From Ascoidea asiatica JCM 7603 (taxonomy: Eukaryota > Fungi > Ascomycota): a stretch of DNA of 64,000 nucleotides. Location: the NCBI GenBank assembly GCA_001600695.1, contig BCKQ01000005.1, positions 1,107,820 to 1,171,819 on the forward strand, in the 5' to 3' direction. Positions 2,289 to 28,345 of the stretch are shown here, piece by piece. The notes below the pieces were generated by a model. That model was not told the origin of the DNA and made no database searches. It saw only the letters and a list, made by a program, of their open reading frames with translations. Within the stretch, counting starts at the first letter, position 1; each line of letters starts with the position of its first letter. Position numbers and translations under genes: made by a program.

Positions 2289-3832
2289 TATTAAAAAAAC
2301 AATCAATAATAAATTCAAAAAATGATTTAAAATCAATTAAATCAATTTCTTCTTCAACTTCAACTAAAATTATTTCAATTAAAGATAGAATTAATTCATA
2401 TTTTATTAAAAAACCAAAATTTAATACTAAAATCTCAAAAAAATTCAAATCTTCAAATTCAAAATTATTACAAAAATTACATATCGTTAATAATAATAAT
2501 AATAATAATAATAACAATAATGATGGTATTAATTCTTACGAGAGTGATAATTATCCTTATACAAATTCTCAATCTTCATCTAGAGTTACTTCAAATAGAT
2601 ACTCTTTACCAAATCCAACTTCTGTAAATTTATCTTTAAATTCATCAAATCAAATTCAATCAAAACCTCATTCACAACCTTTAACTTTAAAACAATATCA
2701 ACTTCAACCTTCAATGTCATATTCTGCTGGTGATTTTAATTCACTTGATAATTCATCAAATTCAAGATCTGTTTCTGCTTCAACTACAACTTCAATTTCT
2801 TCAACTTCATCAACAATGTCAAATTTATCTGATCAATCTTCTATAAGTTCTGTTTCATCTATTGGTTCCAACAACCCTATATCTGATTTAACATCCCCAC
2901 TTACATCTTATAAGCCTACAAATAATAATAATAATAATAATCAATTACCTGATATTAATTCAAATATCACAAGACATTTTAGTTCATCTTCATTAAATAA
3001 GAATAAAATCACTTTACCTCCAATTACTTTACCATTACCTTATAATTCAAATCCAATTAGAAAACCATCATTAAATCCTTCATTTACTTCAAATCCAAAA
3101 AATTATACTTATATAAGTAATGTTAACGATATTATGTCAATTCATAAACTCAATAATCAACAAAAACAACTTCAAAATAATTATGGTTATGGTTACAATA
3201 ATAGTAATACTATTGATAGACCATTTTCTTATCCTGATTCAAGATCAAACTCTTTATCTAATGTCTGTTTATCTACTAATGATTTAGCTTACACTTCATC
3301 AAAACCAATTTTGAGACCTCCTTTGAGATCTTTTTCATCCTCGTTAATAAAACACTCAGTTCCAACTCCTACTCCTACTACTATTAAAACTACAACTACA
3401 AATACTTCCCAAGTTGCAATAACTAATAACTCTCCTCCTACTTTAGCTTCATCCTCTTCAACTTCACTAAGTTCAAATTCAAATTCATCCAAAATATCTT
3501 CTGATAACTCTTCTAGTAAATCACAACCTATAACCGGGGCTCGTACTCAGTCTGTTTCTCATCATCATCATCATAAAAGAACTTGTGTTTCGTGTGGATC
3601 TTCTCAATCTCCTTGTTGGAGACCTTCTTGGTCTTTATCAGCAGGTCAATTATGCAATTCATGTGGATTAAGATATAAAAAAACAGGAGTTAGATGTATA
3701 AATTCTAAATGTCTAAGAATCCCTGCAAAAAGTGAATGGAATTTAATTAGAAATAAAGCAAATAGCATTAGAAAAGATTATCAATGTTTAAATTGTGGTT
3801 ATGAAGTTGAAATAAATGGTAAACTTGATTGA
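1127..3832 (+). CDS. ASH1: GATA-type zinc-finger transcriptional repressor Ash1, with a very long Asn/Ser-rich N-terminal region
   Basis: C-terminal [16 protein letters not shown]...[14 protein letters not shown]...C.RIP...YQCLNC closely matches the Ash1-specific GATA finger as I recall it; near PRS1 as in S. cerevisiae (YKL185W/YKL181W). Confidence 0.9.
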
Positions 3833-5417
3833 ACTACTTGTAAATTATATTATTTTTTCAGTCATTTTTATTTTATTTATAATACTTTATTTTTTCTCAT
3901 TTATTTAACTTTGATTTTTTCTAAGCTTGTCTTTATGATTATTGCTCTTTTCTTTAATATTTTTATTATTTTCATATTCATTTTGTATTTTTTCAGATCA
4001 TTTGCTATTTATTATATTTTTATCCCATATTGGCCTGTTTTTTTTGTAATTCTAACTATAATGATCGCTAGATTTTATCTCAACATTTTAATCATGCTTT
4101 ATTAGTCAATTCATTTCTACATTTTAGCCAAATCTTTTTTTCTATTTAATTCTTTTTTGTTATCTCCATTTGAATTTATCTTAATGGCTTTTTATAAATT
4201 GGTACTGGTACTATTTTTGCTTTAGTTCTTGTATTGTGTGTCTATTTTGAAGCAGTAACTAGGAAGAAAAAAATAATTATTTTGATTTCAAAATATTTGT
4301 TTTTTTTTGCCTCATATGCTTATATATTTTGCTACCTATCTATCTATCTATATATATATATAATTATATGTAACATTAATCATACAATCAGTAATATAAT
4401 ATATATTTTGTAACTGTTATTTTTTTGTCTATTTCTTTGCAAACTGAAATTCGATGTAGTTGTTATATTCTAACCATACCCTGAATTTTAAATTTCGTAG
4501 GCTTAAGAGAAATTCAATATTTTTTTTAATGTAAAATGTTGCTCTAAGAAATTCTCACTGCCATCAAGATCAAGCACAATGAATTAATTCAAAGCCAATA
4601 AAGCTATTGTCATGGAGAAACAAAAAAAAATTAGTCAATCATTGTAATTTGAAACAATAGTATATTGTTTCTTTTACAATATCAAATAACTTTGTTGTGA
4701 TGTTTTAACACTAAATAAGTAGCGATTGATATTTTGAAAATTCAACAGTAAAAGATCTTGTTCCAGTCATTTTTTTATAACAAGATAAAACAAAATATTT
4801 TACGATACGAAAAAACTTTTTTAGAAAATAAATTTTATTATATAAAACCAAGTATTATAAATCATATATCTAAATACATCCACACACAAACATGAATAAA
4901 ACCATACCAAAGAAATTACTAATGCCACAATAGCCTAGGTGGTGATAAAATAAAAATAATAGAAACCAACAGAAAATGCAAAATACAAATTAAAAAAATA
5001 AAAAAACAGAAATTAAGAAGAAAAGTTAACAATGAAAGAGCTTCAATAAAGACCGTTAGAAATTTTCAGTAAAAAATGAAAAAATAAAAGTCTGAAAAAG
5101 CATCTGAAGAAAAAGATAACCTCAATAAAATATATAACAAAGTAATCAAAGGAATTGTAAAGAAAATATTTCAAATCATTTTGAAATTTCAAAATGATTG
5201 CAAGTTTAATTGGATCTTTCTTTTTCCTCAATTTTTTTTGAGATTCTGACTTTTTTTGAGATTTTGAATTATTGAAAAAATGGGAAAGTTTTGAATTTGG
5301 AAGATAAAAGTCATAATCATCAAAAGAAAAATCGAAGATAAACAATTTAAAAAAGAAATTAAAAATTTTTGAAGCAAATCTTTGTCCTTTTGAAAATTTA
5401 AGAGGAGTTGTCTGTGA

Positions 5418-7887: not shown

Positions 7888-10635
7888 TTATTTAAAGTTC
7901 TTTTGTTTGGATTCATTCAAATAATTTTGAATATCTGAATTTTTAAATCCTAATTTAATAATTGTACGATATAAGAACATTATATCATATTCATTAACTT
8001 CTTTCTCAGGAATCATCACTACAATTTCATTCACACTTTTTATAGGCAACTTCTTATCAACTTTATATTCATCTTCTGATTCTATGACAATATCATTATT
8101 CTTAGTTATTTTAGTATCTTCATTTTCAAGTTTTTCAATTTCTTTTTTATATTCAATAATTTTATTTCTTAAATCATTTAATTTTTCTGTATCATTATTG
8201 AAATTTTTATCAAATTCATCTTCATTATTTATAGTACCTAATGAATAAGTTTTTTTACTATTTTCACTATCTCGAACTTTCATATTTCGATTTTTATTCC
8301 TTTCAATTAAATAATTTTCTCTGATTAATTTATATATTTCTTCATTTAAATCATTCTTTGATTTAGTTTTATTTTCATCTTTATTTTCATCTTTGTGTTT
8401 ACTTTCTTTTTCAATTTCACTTTCTTCACTTTCAATATATTCAATTGAATTTTCATTAGTTACAATATTTTTAATTAATCCAGTATCTTCATTTCTACTT
8501 AATTTTGAATCCATTATGATAAAATTTCTATAATCTAAGATTGAATCAATTCCAATATATATAATTTTATGAATATTTAAATGATGAAAATTTAAATTAT
8601 TTATAAATAAAGATTTTGTAATAAATACATTTAATTTTTCTTCAATTAAATCATTTGATTCATTTAAATTATCTTGAGTATAAATAATTTTATTATTAAA
8701 ATATTCTTCATTATCAAAGATTGAATTGAATTTTGTAATTGAACAACTTTCAGGTATTATAAGTATAACTCTTTTAAATTCAATAATTTCATTATCATTT
8801 ATTTTATTGTAATTATTATTTCTTAAATTTATATTTTTATTTTTATATTTATTTCTAATATTATTATTATTTTTAAAAAAAAAATTACTTTTATTTTTAA
8901 TATCATTTTTAATAAAATTTATAAATAAATAATTTTTTAAAAATTTTATAAAATTTAAATTAAATAATTTTAAAATATTTTTATTTAAATTTTGAATTCT
9001 ATAATTTTTATAAAAAATATCAAATTGTAAAACTTCATTTTTATTTAATTCATTAATTAAATTATAATTATTTGGTATAATTGGTAATTTATTTTCTAAA
9101 ATTAAATTTTCATTATTTAAATTTAATAAAGTTAATTTATTATAATCACTTAATTTTTTAATTGAATATGAATTAATTTCATTTATTAATGGTTTTCCAA
9201 TAGTTATTATATTTTTATTATCATAATTATCTTCAATGTTAGATGATGTAGATTTATTTAAGAAATTATAAAAATTATTTGAATAATCAATAGAATTAAA
9301 AATTAAAATTTTATTTAATTTTGAAAATTCATTTGATAAAATTTTAAGATCTTTTATGAAATAATTTAATAAAATTTCAATTGGTTTTAATTTTATATTT
9401 TTTTCATTAATTTTTTTTTTATTAATAAAATTATTTGAATTTGATAATTGTAAATCTAAATTATCAATTGAGATAATTGATAAATTTTTAAAAAAATTAA
9501 ATAAATAAGATTTTAATCTTAAATTATTAATATTTTTTAAATTTGATAATGAAATTAAATTTAATAAATTTATTGGAGTTGAAATTATTAAATTTGAATT
9601 TTTTTGAATAATTTGATTAATTAATTGATCATTATTATTATTATTATTAAAAGAATTATTATATGAATTTATGAATTCATTATCTAAATATAATATTGGA
9701 ATTTCAAAATCTTGTAAATTAGTATCAATAATTTTATTAAATAAATTATTTTTATAATTTAAAATAGAATTATTTGAATTAAGAATAATTAAATAATTTT
9801 TATCACTAGATTGATTATTTTGATTATGATTATGATTATGATTTTGAGAATCTAAAATATCAATTGGGATATCATTTTGATTAATAAATTTAATTTTATT
9901 TACTTTTTGATTTTCTTTTTTAATTTCATTTTGAATATTAAATTTAATTTTCAATTTTTTTCTATTAAGATTTATTGATTTTATTAAATTATTTAAAATA
10001 TATAAGAAATTAATTAATGAATTTCCAGTACCTTGATAATTTCTAATTAATATAATTTTTTTTTTAAAATTTTGAAAAGTTTTTAAAATTGATAAAATTC
10101 TTTTTTGTGATAATGTTGGTATATAAATTTTATTAAATTTTAAAATTTTAATTAATTTTGAATTTATGAAAAAATCTTCAAAATTTTTTAAATCATATGG
10201 ATTAAATTTCTCAATTAAATGTTTATAATCAGATTTTTTTATTTCATTATTTTGAAAATTTTCAATAATTTTATATTTATTATATTTATTTACATTTTTT
10301 TGAATACTATCTTGAAATTTTTTACTATGATTATTAATATCAAAATGTTTATCATATGGGTTATCATATGGGTTATCATATGAATTATGATATAATTTTT
10401 TATTATTATTGTTTCTATGATTATTTCTATTACTTCTTTTATTTTCTCGTTCTTCAGATCTTTTATCTTGTTTATATTCTTTAAATGCTAAGTAATCTTT
10501 AAGATTTTTATGACCAGAATAAGATTTATTTTGTTTATTTTTTTTAGTTGATATATTTTTTATAGTTAATCTTTTGATAGAAGTATTGAAAAATAGATTC
10601 CTCTGTATTAATAATGAACTTCTAGATCGAAACAT
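7888..10635 (-). CDS. Degenerate DEAD-box-like (SF2) protein, probably mitochondrial; likely catalytically inactive
   Basis: Long ORF; first ATG at 10635 (track start 10647 is GTG). Basic, acid-free N-terminus MFRSRSSLLIQRNLFF. Q-motif-like FEDF...IYIPTLSQ, motif I-like QGTGNS, Ib-like ISTPINL and II-like IDNLD occur in canonical order. Confidence 0.65.
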   Translation of the reverse strand: MFRSRSSLLIQRNLFFNTSIKRLTIKNISTKKNKQNKSYSGHKNLKDYLAFKEYKQDKRSEERENKRSNRNNHRNNNNKKLYHNSYDNPYDNPYDKHFDINNHSKKFQDSIQKNVNKYNKYKIIENFQNNEIKKSDYKHLIEKFNPYDLKNFEDFFINSKLIKILKFNKIYIPTLSQKRILSILKTFQNFKKKIILIRNYQGTGNSLINFLYILNNLIKSINLNRKKLKIKFNIQNEIKKENQKVNKIKFINQNDIPIDILDSQNHNHNHNQNNQSSDKNYLIILNSNNSILNYKNNLFNKIIDTNLQDFEIPILYLDNEFINSYNNSFNNNNNNDQLINQIIQKNSNLIISTPINLLNLISLSNLKNINNLRLKSYLFNFFKNLSIISIDNLDLQLSNSNNFINKKKINEKNIKLKPIEILLNYFIKDLKILSNEFSKLNKILIFNSIDYSNNFYNFLNKSTSSNIEDNYDNKNIITIGKPLINEINSYSIKKLSDYNKLTLLNLNNENLILENKLPIIPNNYNLINELNKNEVLQFDIFYKNYRIQNLNKNILKLFNLNFIKFLKNYLFINFIKNDIKNKSNFFFKNNNNIRNKYKNKNINLRNNNYNKINDNEIIEFKRVILIIPESCSITKFNSIFDNEEYFNNKIIYTQDNLNESNDLIEEKLNVFITKSLFINNLNFHHLNIHKIIYIGIDSILDYRNFIIMDSKLSRNEDTGLIKNIVTNENSIEYIESEESEIEKESKHKDENKDENKTKSKNDLNEEIYKLIRENYLIERNKNRNMKVRDSENSKKTYSLGTINNEDEFDKNFNNDTEKLNDLRNKIIEYKKEIEKLENEDTKITKNNDIVIESEDEYKVDKKLPIKSVNEIVVMIPEKEVNEYDIMFLYRTIIKLGFKNSDIQNYLNESKQKNFK

Positions 10636-10690
10636 CTTTGAATACACATTAATGGATTGATTGATCCAAGGATATATCCAAGTTGTTTAT

Positions 10691-10730
10691 ATTCTTGTTT
10701 ATTCTTGTTTATTCTTGTTTATTCTTGTTT
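10691..10730 (+). repeat. (ATTCTTGTTT)x4 just upstream of the DEAD-box-like gene
   Basis: Read directly. Confidence 0.95.
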
Positions 10731-10754
10731 ATTTATTTTGCTTCTTGCATTATT

Positions 10755-10793: not shown

Positions 10794-11242
10794 CATTTTT
10801 GCGGGTCTCCTGGAATATTTTTTGGCGGATTGAGAGATTTCCGTTTTCAATTGTAAAACCTTGGTGATCCGCTGTGATTTCCGGAACGTCAGTGAGTTTT
10901 GCCAGAGAAAACGTTCTTACTGTAAATAGAAGCCACATGAAACGTATTTCTGGTCATGAAGAACGGAAGTGTATTGTTTGAAATACAGTTGTTGAAGAAT
11001 AGTACACATGGTTTTAATGTACTAGTAGTAGAGTTATATTACATAGTATTCCATTTCTACAAGTAAACAATACTTTTGCTGCTGTGTTGTTCATGGCCCT
11101 GTTTATGGCTGTCCCGTGTACCGAGCAGAGTGCTGGTTTCTTGACAGGTTGTTGGCGTGGTGGAAAGAAATGCGAAACGTGTGTGGGAAAGAAGAAAAAT
11201 TTTATTTATTTGCTGCAAAGCTGGAAAACTGACAAGAAAAAA

Positions 11243-11565: not shown

Positions 11566-12185
11566 ATGAGAAAGTGTAAAGTTTTTATTGGATCTTCACA
11601 TCCTGAATTAGGTAAATTAATTTGTAATAAATTAGGTATTGAACCAAGTAAAGTTAAATTAAATAAATTTAGTAATGGAGAAACTTCAATATCAATTGAA
11701 GAATCTGTAAGAGATTATGATGTTTATATTATTCAATCAACTTCAAATAATATTAATAATCATATTATGGAATTATTAATTTTAATTAATGCTTGTAAAG
11801 GTGGTTCTGCATCTAAAATTACAGTAATTTTACCAAATTTTCCATATAGTAATTTTTCAAAAATTGATATAAAAAAATTTAGAACTTGTATAACTGCAAG
11901 ATTAATTTCAAATTTAATTATTATATCTGGTTGTGATCATGTAATTTCAATGGATTTACATGCTGGACAAATTCAAGGATTTTTTAATAAACCTGTTGAT
12001 AATTTATTTGCAATGCCATTATTTATAAATTGGATTAAAAATAATATTAAAGATGATATAAAAAATTGTGTGATAATAAGTAAAAATGCAAGTGGTACAA
12101 AAAGAGTAACTGAATTAGCTGATAAATTAAAAGTTACATTTGGTTTAATTCAAATCTTAGATCATAAAAGTAATAATATTATTAC

Positions 12186-12216
<31 letters not shown>

Positions 12217-12927
12217 GATAATATAAATAATAAATTAAATAGTTATAATACTGGTAGAATTGTTAATGGTCATATACTTGGAATTAAAGAATATTTTAAA
12301 GAAAAAGGAAATATTAAAGATCTTGAATATACTCAAGATATTGAAGACAAAGAAGAAGTAGAAGAAGTAGAGGAAGAAAACATAGAAAAAGAAGAAAATA
12401 TGAGTGAAATAAGTAATGAAAGTACTTCAAGTTATAAAACTAATAAAACTACAGAATATTTTGATGATGATTATTTAAATGATATGACAAGTAAATTATT
12501 TAAATTAAATGATAAATCTATAACTTTAGTTGGTAATGTAACAAATAAAATTTCAATAATTTTAGATGATATGATTAAAAAACCAGAAATTTATATTGCA
12601 ATTAGTGAACATTTAAAAATTAATTGTAAAAGTTCAAAAATTTATTTAATTGCAACTCATGGAATTTTTTTAAATAATAGTTTTGAAATTTTAATAAATT
12701 GTAAATTTATTGATAAAATTATTATTACAAATACTTGTCCAATTTATATTAATGAAATTTTAATTAAAATTAAAGATTCTAAATTTAATTATAAAAAAAA
12801 TTTTATTAATTTAATTAATAAAAAATTAGAAATTATTGATGTTTCTGGAGTTTTTGCAGAATGTATTAGAAGAACTCATTTTGGTGAAAGTATTTCTGCT
12901 TTATTTGATAATATGATTCATTTATAA
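11566..12927 (+). CDS. PRS1: Ribose-phosphate pyrophosphokinase subunit, Prs1 type, divergent
   Basis: MRKCKVFIGSSHPEL, KFSNGET, MDLHAGQIQGFF.KPVDNL, GTKRVT.LAD, ATHGIF, FAECIRR.H.GESIS.LF; central low-complexity insertion at the position of the Prs1 non-homologous region. Confidence 0.9.
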
Positions 12928-27706: not shown

Positions 27707-28345
27707 TCATTGAATAAGAGCTGTAATTTGATTAATCTTTCCAGCTAATAAATTCCAACTTTTTTTGTTCATGTCAATATTTCTCTTCAAGAAAGTGATC
27801 TCATCATTTAAAATTTGATTGTATTTTACTAGAAATTTTAATGAAAAATTTATACCTTTTGCATTATTGTTCAAATCCATCGTGATGAATTTATTCAAAT
27901 TTTCTAAATTGATCATGTTGGTTTCATAATATTGAAAGAATTCATCAAGATAAAAAGTCTTATCTTTTGCAAACTGACCTTGAAAAGCAGATTTACTAAA
28001 ATCTGAATTGAATTTATCAAGTTGAATATACTGATTTTTAAGATTCTTATATATTATAGTATTTAGCTTTAGAAACTGTGTTATGAGTTGATGATTTTTA
28101 ACCACTTTGAATTTTAAATCTTTGAGTTGGGCTATGTCTTTTTCTTGATCAGTAGAGCTGGAAGAATTTGATTCGGTTGCTGAATTTGAGGTTATTCTTT
28201 TTAATGCAGATTTGAATATTAAAGAATTTGATTGAGTAAGCACTTCTGATATGGTTGACTGGTATTGATTGAGCTGTTTGATTGCCTGTAAATGATCGAT
28301 TCTTTCTTTGAAATTTTTTTCATCCTGTTCTGTCTGTCTACTCAT
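27707..28345 (-). CDS. Coiled-coil protein, probable THO complex subunit Mft1/THOC7 orthologue
   Basis: 212-aa ATG ORF. Termini resemble S. cerevisiae Mft1 as recalled (C-terminal L..N..L..EI..L...I...K..W...A.....IT pattern). Adjacent to PIF1, like YML062C/YML061C. Confidence 0.55.
   Translation of the reverse strand: MSRQTEQDEKNFKERIDHLQAIKQLNQYQSTISEVLTQSNSLIFKSALKRITSNSATESNSSSSTDQEKDIAQLKDLKFKVVKNHQLITQFLKLNTIIYKNLKNQYIQLDKFNSDFSKSAFQGQFAKDKTFYLDEFFQYYETNMINLENLNKFITMDLNNNAKGINFSLKFLVKYNQILNDEITFLKRNIDMNKKSWNLLAGKINQITALIQ

Follow-up and report, generated by a model that had tools for sequence, protein, structure and literature searches.

A DEAD-box-derived open reading frame with replaced catalytic residues in the yeast Ascoidea asiatica: a likely pseudo-helicase, probably mitochondrial

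How far can a helicase drift in composition and still be recognised as one, and would the gene that encodes it still serve the cell? The question is raised by an open reading frame (ORF) on the minus strand of a 64,000-nucleotide stretch of the Ascoidea asiatica JCM 7603 genome, hereafter the window, which corresponds to positions 1107820-1171819 of contig 5 (BCKQ01000005.1) in an assembly of 20.3 Mb, 71 contigs and about 25% guanine plus cytosine (GC). A sequence-only reading of the window had taken this ORF, at 7888-10635, for a mitochondrial-type DEAD-box pseudo-helicase with every catalytic motif broken. By comparing its product with profiles built from DEAD-box paralogues of the same genome, and by following its frame, its N-terminus and its gene neighbourhood, we consider it probable that this nuclear gene encodes a DEAD-box descendant without catalytic activity (a pseudo-helicase), that selection has kept its reading frame open, and that the product resides in mitochondria and acts structurally.

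The descent is recorded in the first of the two RecA domains that a DEAD-box protein carries. Thirty-six loci matching PF00270 were extracted from the same genome and profiles were made from 26 canonical DEAD-box paralogues, the RecA1-only profile comprising eIF4A columns 20-225; since the composition correction of HMMER hides so biased a sequence, it was switched off and composition-matched controls were used. The own-genome RecA1 profile scores 31.9 bits on residues 140-470 of the protein, against 4.9 +/- 2.5 bits for 1000 global shuffles, of which the best reaches 18.3 bits and none the real score (z = 10.9), and against 3.3 bits for the reversed protein. Milder disturbances of the order of residues fall short as well: in none of 500 trials each does a shuffle inside windows of 5, 10 or 20 residues, or a permutation of 15-residue blocks, reach the real score (z = 5.7-9.7, with 6.8 for the 5-residue windows and 5.7 for the permuted block order). 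Because these local shuffles and block permutations never attain it, the RecA1 signal is positional and colinear rather than compositional. A comparison by hhalign against the alignment of 26 paralogues returns a single colinear alignment of 288 columns (residues 69-493, P = 9e-4) that runs through motifs Q, I, Ia, Ib, II and III, and P falls to 2.4e-4 against the trimmed RecA1 profile. The register of the motifs agrees across hmmalign, hhalign and MAFFT, with MAFFT departing at motif III only. On this evidence from profiles and alignments, homology to domain 1 of the DEAD-box proteins is established for the N-terminal RecA domain, whose six motif sites all fall into register, and the DEAD-box ancestry proposed by the sequence-only reading is upheld for this domain. 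The language-model features of the whole protein, which involve no alignment, likewise place it beside DEAD and Helicase_C clusters (0.91-0.94, 177-182 shared features).

What has become of the motifs within this domain is listed in Table 1. The positions that the earlier reading had given for PTLSQ, QGTGNS, STP and DNLD are exact, the STP string (residues 352-354, window 9574-9582) lying at the site of motif Ib, and the alignment sets Q, I, Ia, Ib, II and III at the sites that it had chosen. By alignment with the paralogues, ATP binding and hydrolysis have lost their residues (Walker A Lys, DEAD Glu and SAT all being replaced), and other residues stand for Arg in Ia and Ib, two motifs that contact RNA. 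MAFFT would set motif III at about residue 476 instead, where SAT is absent too, and the arginines of motif VI (HRxGRxGR) are absent from the protein in the MAFFT alignment. In DEAD-box enzymes, a single change among four elements (Walker A Lys, DEAD Glu, SAT and motif VI Arg) is enough to abolish ATP hydrolysis. The loss of these four is confirmed under hmmalign, whereas the phrase "every catalytic motif broken" in the sequence-only reading goes too far: the protein retains its Q motif, the P-loop G-x-G, T-P in motif Ib, the two Asp of motif II and the first residue, Ser, of motif III. In the same alignment, three predicted mitochondrial DEAD-box paralogues have canonical motifs I, II and III, with small variations in Ib and VI in two of them (L026 and L027). 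Since the codons for Lys, Arg and Glu are themselves AT-rich, the change of such residues to Asn would reflect lost constraint on catalysis and not mutation pressure alone.

The frame itself is real and stands, without an internal stop, where the sequence-only reading had placed it. It is open over 7888-10647 from a GTG, the first ATG at 10635 giving 915 residues; the other five frames hold 50-228 stops, and a stop would be expected every 8.5 codons from the base composition, so that a run of 915 codons free of stops would arise with a probability near 1e-50. The GC content of the ORF is 13.8% (0.21, 0.15 and 0.05 at codon positions 1, 2 and 3), and its product is made of 19.6% Asn, 13.6% Ile and 13.2% Lys, with 0.1% Ala and 0.9% Gly, that is, one alanine and eight glycines among 915 residues. 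DNA sequencing runs from two studies (2016 and 2023) contain 0.99-1.00 of the sampled words of the ORF; because each of the three is flagged as one from which the assembly may have been made, they speak only weakly against an assembly artefact. A nuclear copy of mitochondrial DNA (NUMT) or a mitochondrial ORF was also considered and is rejected: the AT-richness does not extend beyond the ORF, which reads through without a stop under the standard code, and the promoter that it has in common with its neighbour has a normal GC content. A match to COX1 (PF00115) is absent from all 71 contigs, and the assembly seems to lack the mitochondrial genome.

The N-terminus of the protein resembles a mitochondrial presequence, as had been noticed from the letters, and the resemblance holds on closer inspection. 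Its first acidic residue is at position 47, which has a probability of 0.003 given the 12% Asp plus Glu of the protein. When the 37 helicase-type ORFs of superfamily 2 (SF2) extracted from the genome are ranked by this position, the protein groups with four predicted mitochondrial helicases (L030, L029, L027 and L026, at 45-89), and the other 32 have their first acidic residue at position 23 or below. The hydrophobic moment of the N-terminus is low (0.68). The protein is probably imported into mitochondria, its N-terminus being consistent with a matrix presequence.

Table 1. Features of the ORF and of its predicted product, in window coordinates
Feature	Position	Strand	Residues	State and basis
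Whole ORF	7888-10635	-	1-915	915 codons plus stop (7888-7890); one copy in genome
Presequence-like N-terminus	10498-10635	-	1-46	12 Lys + Arg, 10 Ser + Thr, no Asp or Glu
RecA1-like domain, DEAD-box type	9226-10191	-	149-470	Interrupted by Asn-rich inserts; own-genome profile, shuffles, hhalign, guided model
Upstream aromatic of Q motif	10180-10182	-	F152	hmmalign
Q motif PTLSQ	10105-10119	-	173-177	Retained; canonical aromatic + P-T-x-x-Q; hmmalign
Motif I QGTGNS	10018-10035	-	201-206	Canonical GSGKT; G-x-G kept, Lys to Asn, Thr to Ser
Motif Ia site SNNSIL	9760-9777	-	287-292	PTRELA lost; hmmalign, hhalign, MAFFT
Motif Ib site TPIN	9568-9579	-	353-356	Canonical TPGR; T-P kept, Arg lost
Motif II site DNLD	9454-9465	-	391-394	Canonical DEAD; both Asp kept, Glu to Asn
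Motif III site SID	9286-9294	-	448-450	Canonical SAT; Ser kept; hmmalign and hhalign
Putative RecA2-like domain	8431-9225	-	471-735	Language-model neighbours and guided model
Candidate motif IV	8755-8769	-	623-627	Without conserved Arg/Asp
Candidate motif V	8590-8619	-	673-682	Without conserved Arg/Asp
Candidate motif VI	8494-8532	-	702-714	Without conserved Arg/Asp
Charged C-terminal extension	7891-8430	-	736-915	No family match

A number of results weigh against a selection-kept, mitochondrial pseudo-helicase, and several of them concern the remainder of the protein. The sequence-only reading had traced tandem RecA landmarks through motifs IV and V; of these, the part in RecA1 is significant, whereas the motif IV, V and VI positions are not, since RecA2 scores no better than shuffles (z = -0.3) and hhalign gives P = 0.54. 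MAFFT, hhalign and inspection do align the candidate IV, V and VI strings to the right places, and the language-model features of residues 471-735 alone lie beside eIF4A fragments (0.90), a Helicase_C cluster and Utp25_C clusters (0.86-0.88), at 0.84-0.90 overall. With 24 paralogues as a guide, AlphaFold yields a model whose predicted local confidence (pLDDT) is 70-88 in RecA1 and 65-79 in residues 471-735, with a predicted template-modelling score (pTM) of 0.64, and Foldseek ranks Mss116 first among its matches (4tyy; E = 6e-10, template-modelling scores 0.49/0.56), but the alignment supplies the fold, so the model is circular and indicates compatibility only. A RecA2-like domain after RecA1 may thus be inferred, weakly. 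The unguided, single-sequence AlphaFold model of the protein failed (pLDDT 35); only two long helices predicted in the C-terminal extension (about 760-791 and 805-839), ahead of a short hydrophobic terminus, reach pLDDT 65-81. Searches outside the genome are no more favourable: Pfam is without a match up to E = 10, both for the entire protein and for six pieces of it, phmmer finds only chance matches to L29 (E = 0.4) among PDB sequences and nothing at E up to 0.001 among 1.84 billion representative proteins, and a word-indexed search of 5.8 billion proteins is empty. No search yields a homologue that would show the substitutions to be conserved or the residues to be under purifying selection. 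The targeting call comes from a simple charge rule rather than a trained predictor, and for expression, no RNA run is found among the sequencing runs searched for this yeast. Finally, with 5.2% Gly + Ala + Arg + Pro and 57.5% Phe + Tyr + Met + Ile + Asn + Lys, the protein is the most eroded of the 37 SF2 ORFs, a composition that fits very weak constraint on its amino-acid sequence.

From which DEAD-box protein would such a gene have arisen? The sequence-only reading had suggested Mss116 or Mrh4, and had proposed to look for intact copies of both elsewhere in the genome. They exist: an 882-residue protein (L030; contig 12, 68759-75667, ORF 2494-5139, plus strand) is the Mss116 orthologue, matching PDB Mss116 at 1.5e-82 with the C-terminal extension included; a 650-residue protein (L026; contig 9, 163048-169620, ORF 2722-4671, plus strand) is a second Mss116-like gene, at 4e-45; and a 616-residue protein (L027) is a divergent mitochondrial-type DEAD-box protein of the Mrh4/DDX28 kind, with DDX28 among its best matches. 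An Irc3-like gene (L029) and a genuine Utp25 (contig 7, 201.7 bits) are found as well. Because these are intact elsewhere, our ORF is an extra gene and not the sole orthologue of Mss116, Mrh4, Irc3 or Utp25. The suggested derivation itself is not borne out: in pairwise RecA1 tests, z is 9.3 for a nucleolar paralogue of Has1/Dbp7 type (L017), 7.2 for L021 and 6.6 for L001, against 2.4 and 1.5 for the two Mss116-like proteins (L030 and L026, respectively) and 0.4 for the Mrh4-like one. A pairwise test at this divergence names no parent and lends no support to an origin from Mss116 or Mrh4. A Utp25 paralogue is rejected, there being no match to Utp25_C (PF06862) or to the UTP25 NTPase-like Pfam family and no pairwise similarity to the genome's own Utp25. 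Both Mss116-like genes bear presequence-like N-termini, and the second of them is the second most AT-eroded helicase ORF of the genome (Gly + Ala + Arg + Pro 8.3%), with Walker A, DEAD and SAT kept; being eroded yet retaining these motifs, it may be seen as an intermediate step on a gradient of erosion that ends with our ORF.

Residues 1-46 would serve as a mitochondrial presequence, and the protein, turning over no ATP, would be an adaptor that supports mitochondrial gene expression structurally. It might belong to an mRNA-specific translation-activator complex, or take part in intron splicing or mitoribosome assembly. It would touch its partners by protein surfaces and basic flanks rather than by the canonical helicase RNA clamp, and with the arginines of motifs Ia and Ib lost, any binding of RNA would need other surfaces. 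The earlier description of the product as an RNA-binding scaffold is therefore less secure than that of a protein adaptor, perhaps binding RNA via basic flanks, because the canonical RNA-contact arginines are gone. Pseudo-enzymes as structural parts are a recurrent theme in mitochondrial gene expression, as with the methyltransferase-like Mtf1 and the resolvase-like Mrs1; we know of no dead DEAD-box protein described in mitochondria.

Comparison with known systems places the protein near several of them and identical to none. Like Mss116 and CYT-19, it has a RecA1 domain of DEAD-box type, a presequence-like N-terminus and a long C-terminal extension past the core; unlike them, it lacks the ATPase residues and the Ia and Ib arginines, and it shows no specific sequence affinity to the Mss116-like proteins. 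It shares with Mrh4/DDX28, which acts in assembly of the large mitoribosomal subunit, the DEAD-box type and the predicted mitochondrial location, whereas an intact Mrh4/DDX28-like copy with next to no pairwise signal to it is found elsewhere in the genome. The Schizosaccharomyces pombe protein Mrh5 is a mitochondrial DEAD-box subunit of the stable cox1 translation-activator complex Mrh5-Ppr4-Mtf2-Sls1, and its DEAD residues are needed for subunit contacts too, the helicase motifs serving in contacts between proteins as well (PMC11015131). The likeness to Mrh5 is one of role, a stable subunit of an mRNA-specific translation activator being the kind of role proposed here, and the DEAD box of Mrh5, in contrast, is intact and required for its function. 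A second precedent besides Mrh5 is Utp25/Def, a DEAD-box-like pseudohelicase of the small-subunit (SSU) processome (PMC9539457). With it our protein has in common a DEAD-box-like architecture, degenerate motifs and a presumed structural role, and Utp25_C is among the language-model neighbours of residues 471-735; Utp25, however, is nucleolar, widely conserved and covered by its own Pfam families, whereas the protein studied here matches none of these and has a mitochondrial-looking N-terminus. The boldest form of our interpretation draws on this analogy: a lineage-specific pseudo-helicase kept by selection, with neither ATP hydrolysis nor the canonical RNA clamp, which may have been retained in mitochondria as an ATP-independent adaptor, for instance in a splicing complex or as part of an mRNA-specific translation activator, and would be the first mitochondrial counterpart of the nucleolar Utp25. 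We hold this form to be possible and rather doubtful.

The surroundings of the ORF are those of a typical budding-yeast chromosome. The window also encodes a GATA factor, a SUR7-family protein, a PRS, a Cph2-like helix-loop-helix protein, GAPDH, UTP8, RRM3/PIF1, MAK21, NDC1, RAD4, VIP1, UTP21 and VPS39, in the order GATA, SUR7-like, our ORF, PRS, Cph2-like, GAPDH, UTP8, RRM3 and, farther on, VIP1 and UTP21. In Ascoidea rubescens (KV454475.1:532915-564259, our loci L037/L041, compared with window 1-51000) the order is GATA, an aminotransferase, Sec39, a 253-residue gene, GAPDH, UTP8, RRM3, PRS, VIP1, a 143-residue gene and UTP21. The gross order of the anchors (GATA ... GAPDH-UTP8-RRM3 ... VIP1-UTP21) is kept; PRS has moved, and several of the genes between the anchors are insertions or exchanges, so that the A. 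rubescens region is orthologous to the window but rearranged, as judged from gene order. No counterpart of our ORF is found in this syntenic region, where the ORFs beside PRS are RRM3, UTP8, Sec39, the aminotransferase and the GATA factor, all of them unrelated. The adjacent PRS of the window (11566-12927, plus strand) has at most 51% identity to any protein of a large database, its top match being an A. rubescens paralogue, and looks like a divergent PRS paralogue conserved between both species; that top match is likewise without a PF00156 match. As even this gene reaches only 51%, close relatives of this genome are absent from the protein database.

Our ORF and PRS are divergently arranged and have a promoter in common, an island (window about 10800-11200) that is far richer in GC than either flanking ORF; the fall to 13.8% GC begins at the ORF itself. 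The minus-strand leader (window about 10690-10740) holds some four tandem copies of the 10-base unit AATAAACAAG, 55-105 bases upstream of the start codon. Elsewhere in the window, a 212-residue ORF (27707-28345, minus strand) just upstream of RRM3 matches no Pfam family at E up to 1e-5.

Against a selection-kept pseudo-helicase, other explanations have to be weighed, and the lack of homologues bears on more than one of them. It may reflect fast evolution in a gene that is not lineage-specific: the ORF would then be the orthologue of a described fungal factor, for example another mitochondrial DEAD-box-like protein of yeasts outside Saccharomyces or the "hypothetical protein" of an unnamed Ascomycota cluster (646 residues, 55 members), which is in fact the top language-model neighbour (0.94, 195 shared features), and in a database with no close relative of the genome such orthologues are very hard to see. 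We give this explanation a modest chance, as phmmer found nothing among the 1.84 billion representatives, the Mss116-like, Mrh4-like, Irc3-like and Utp25 slots are already filled in the genome, and similarity to the genome's own Utp25 is lacking. The same lack of an orthologue, here and in the syntenic A. rubescens region, is also what would attend a functionless duplicate in decay, that is, a DEAD-box paralogue freed from constraint, driven to extreme AT and to Asn, Lys and Ile, and becoming a pseudogene; the most eroded composition among the SF2 ORFs, the loss of all catalytic and RNA-contact residues, and the lack of an RNA run as evidence of expression all point the same way. The chance of such decay is nevertheless slim, for neutral sequence of this composition would hold about 107 stops per 915 codons, the divergence from any parent is saturated so that the frame must have been open through a very long history, and both the presequence-like N-terminus and the Q motif have been kept.

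That there is no helicase kinship at all, and that motif-like strings have arisen by chance in a low-complexity orphan rich in Asn, Lys and Ile, is very improbable. Pfam is empty, HMMER under its default bias correction reaches no significance, and profiles in reduced alphabets (3 and 5 classes) failed even on the positive control and carry no weight either way; yet the shuffled, block-permuted and reversed controls never attain the RecA1 score, three aligners agree on the register, and DEAD-box families are the language-model neighbours of the whole protein and, separately, of its C-terminal half. It is harder still to credit an ATPase that remains active by means of non-canonical residues: some contact with nucleotide is conceivable, given the retained Q motif, the P-loop G-x-G and the two Asp left in motif II, whereas Asn stands in place of both the Walker A Lys and the DEAD Glu, SAT is lost, and no motif VI arginines are present.

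A catalytically dead DEAD-box descendant kept by selection thus stays our preferred account, and for now it is a well-founded annotation in a single genome rather than the discovery of a mechanism. Provided that the protein is expressed and imported, it would illustrate how eroded a helicase scaffold may become under extreme AT pressure and yet be kept, and it would provide a natural "motif-null" DEAD-box protein with which the scaffold and ATPase roles of the family may be separated.

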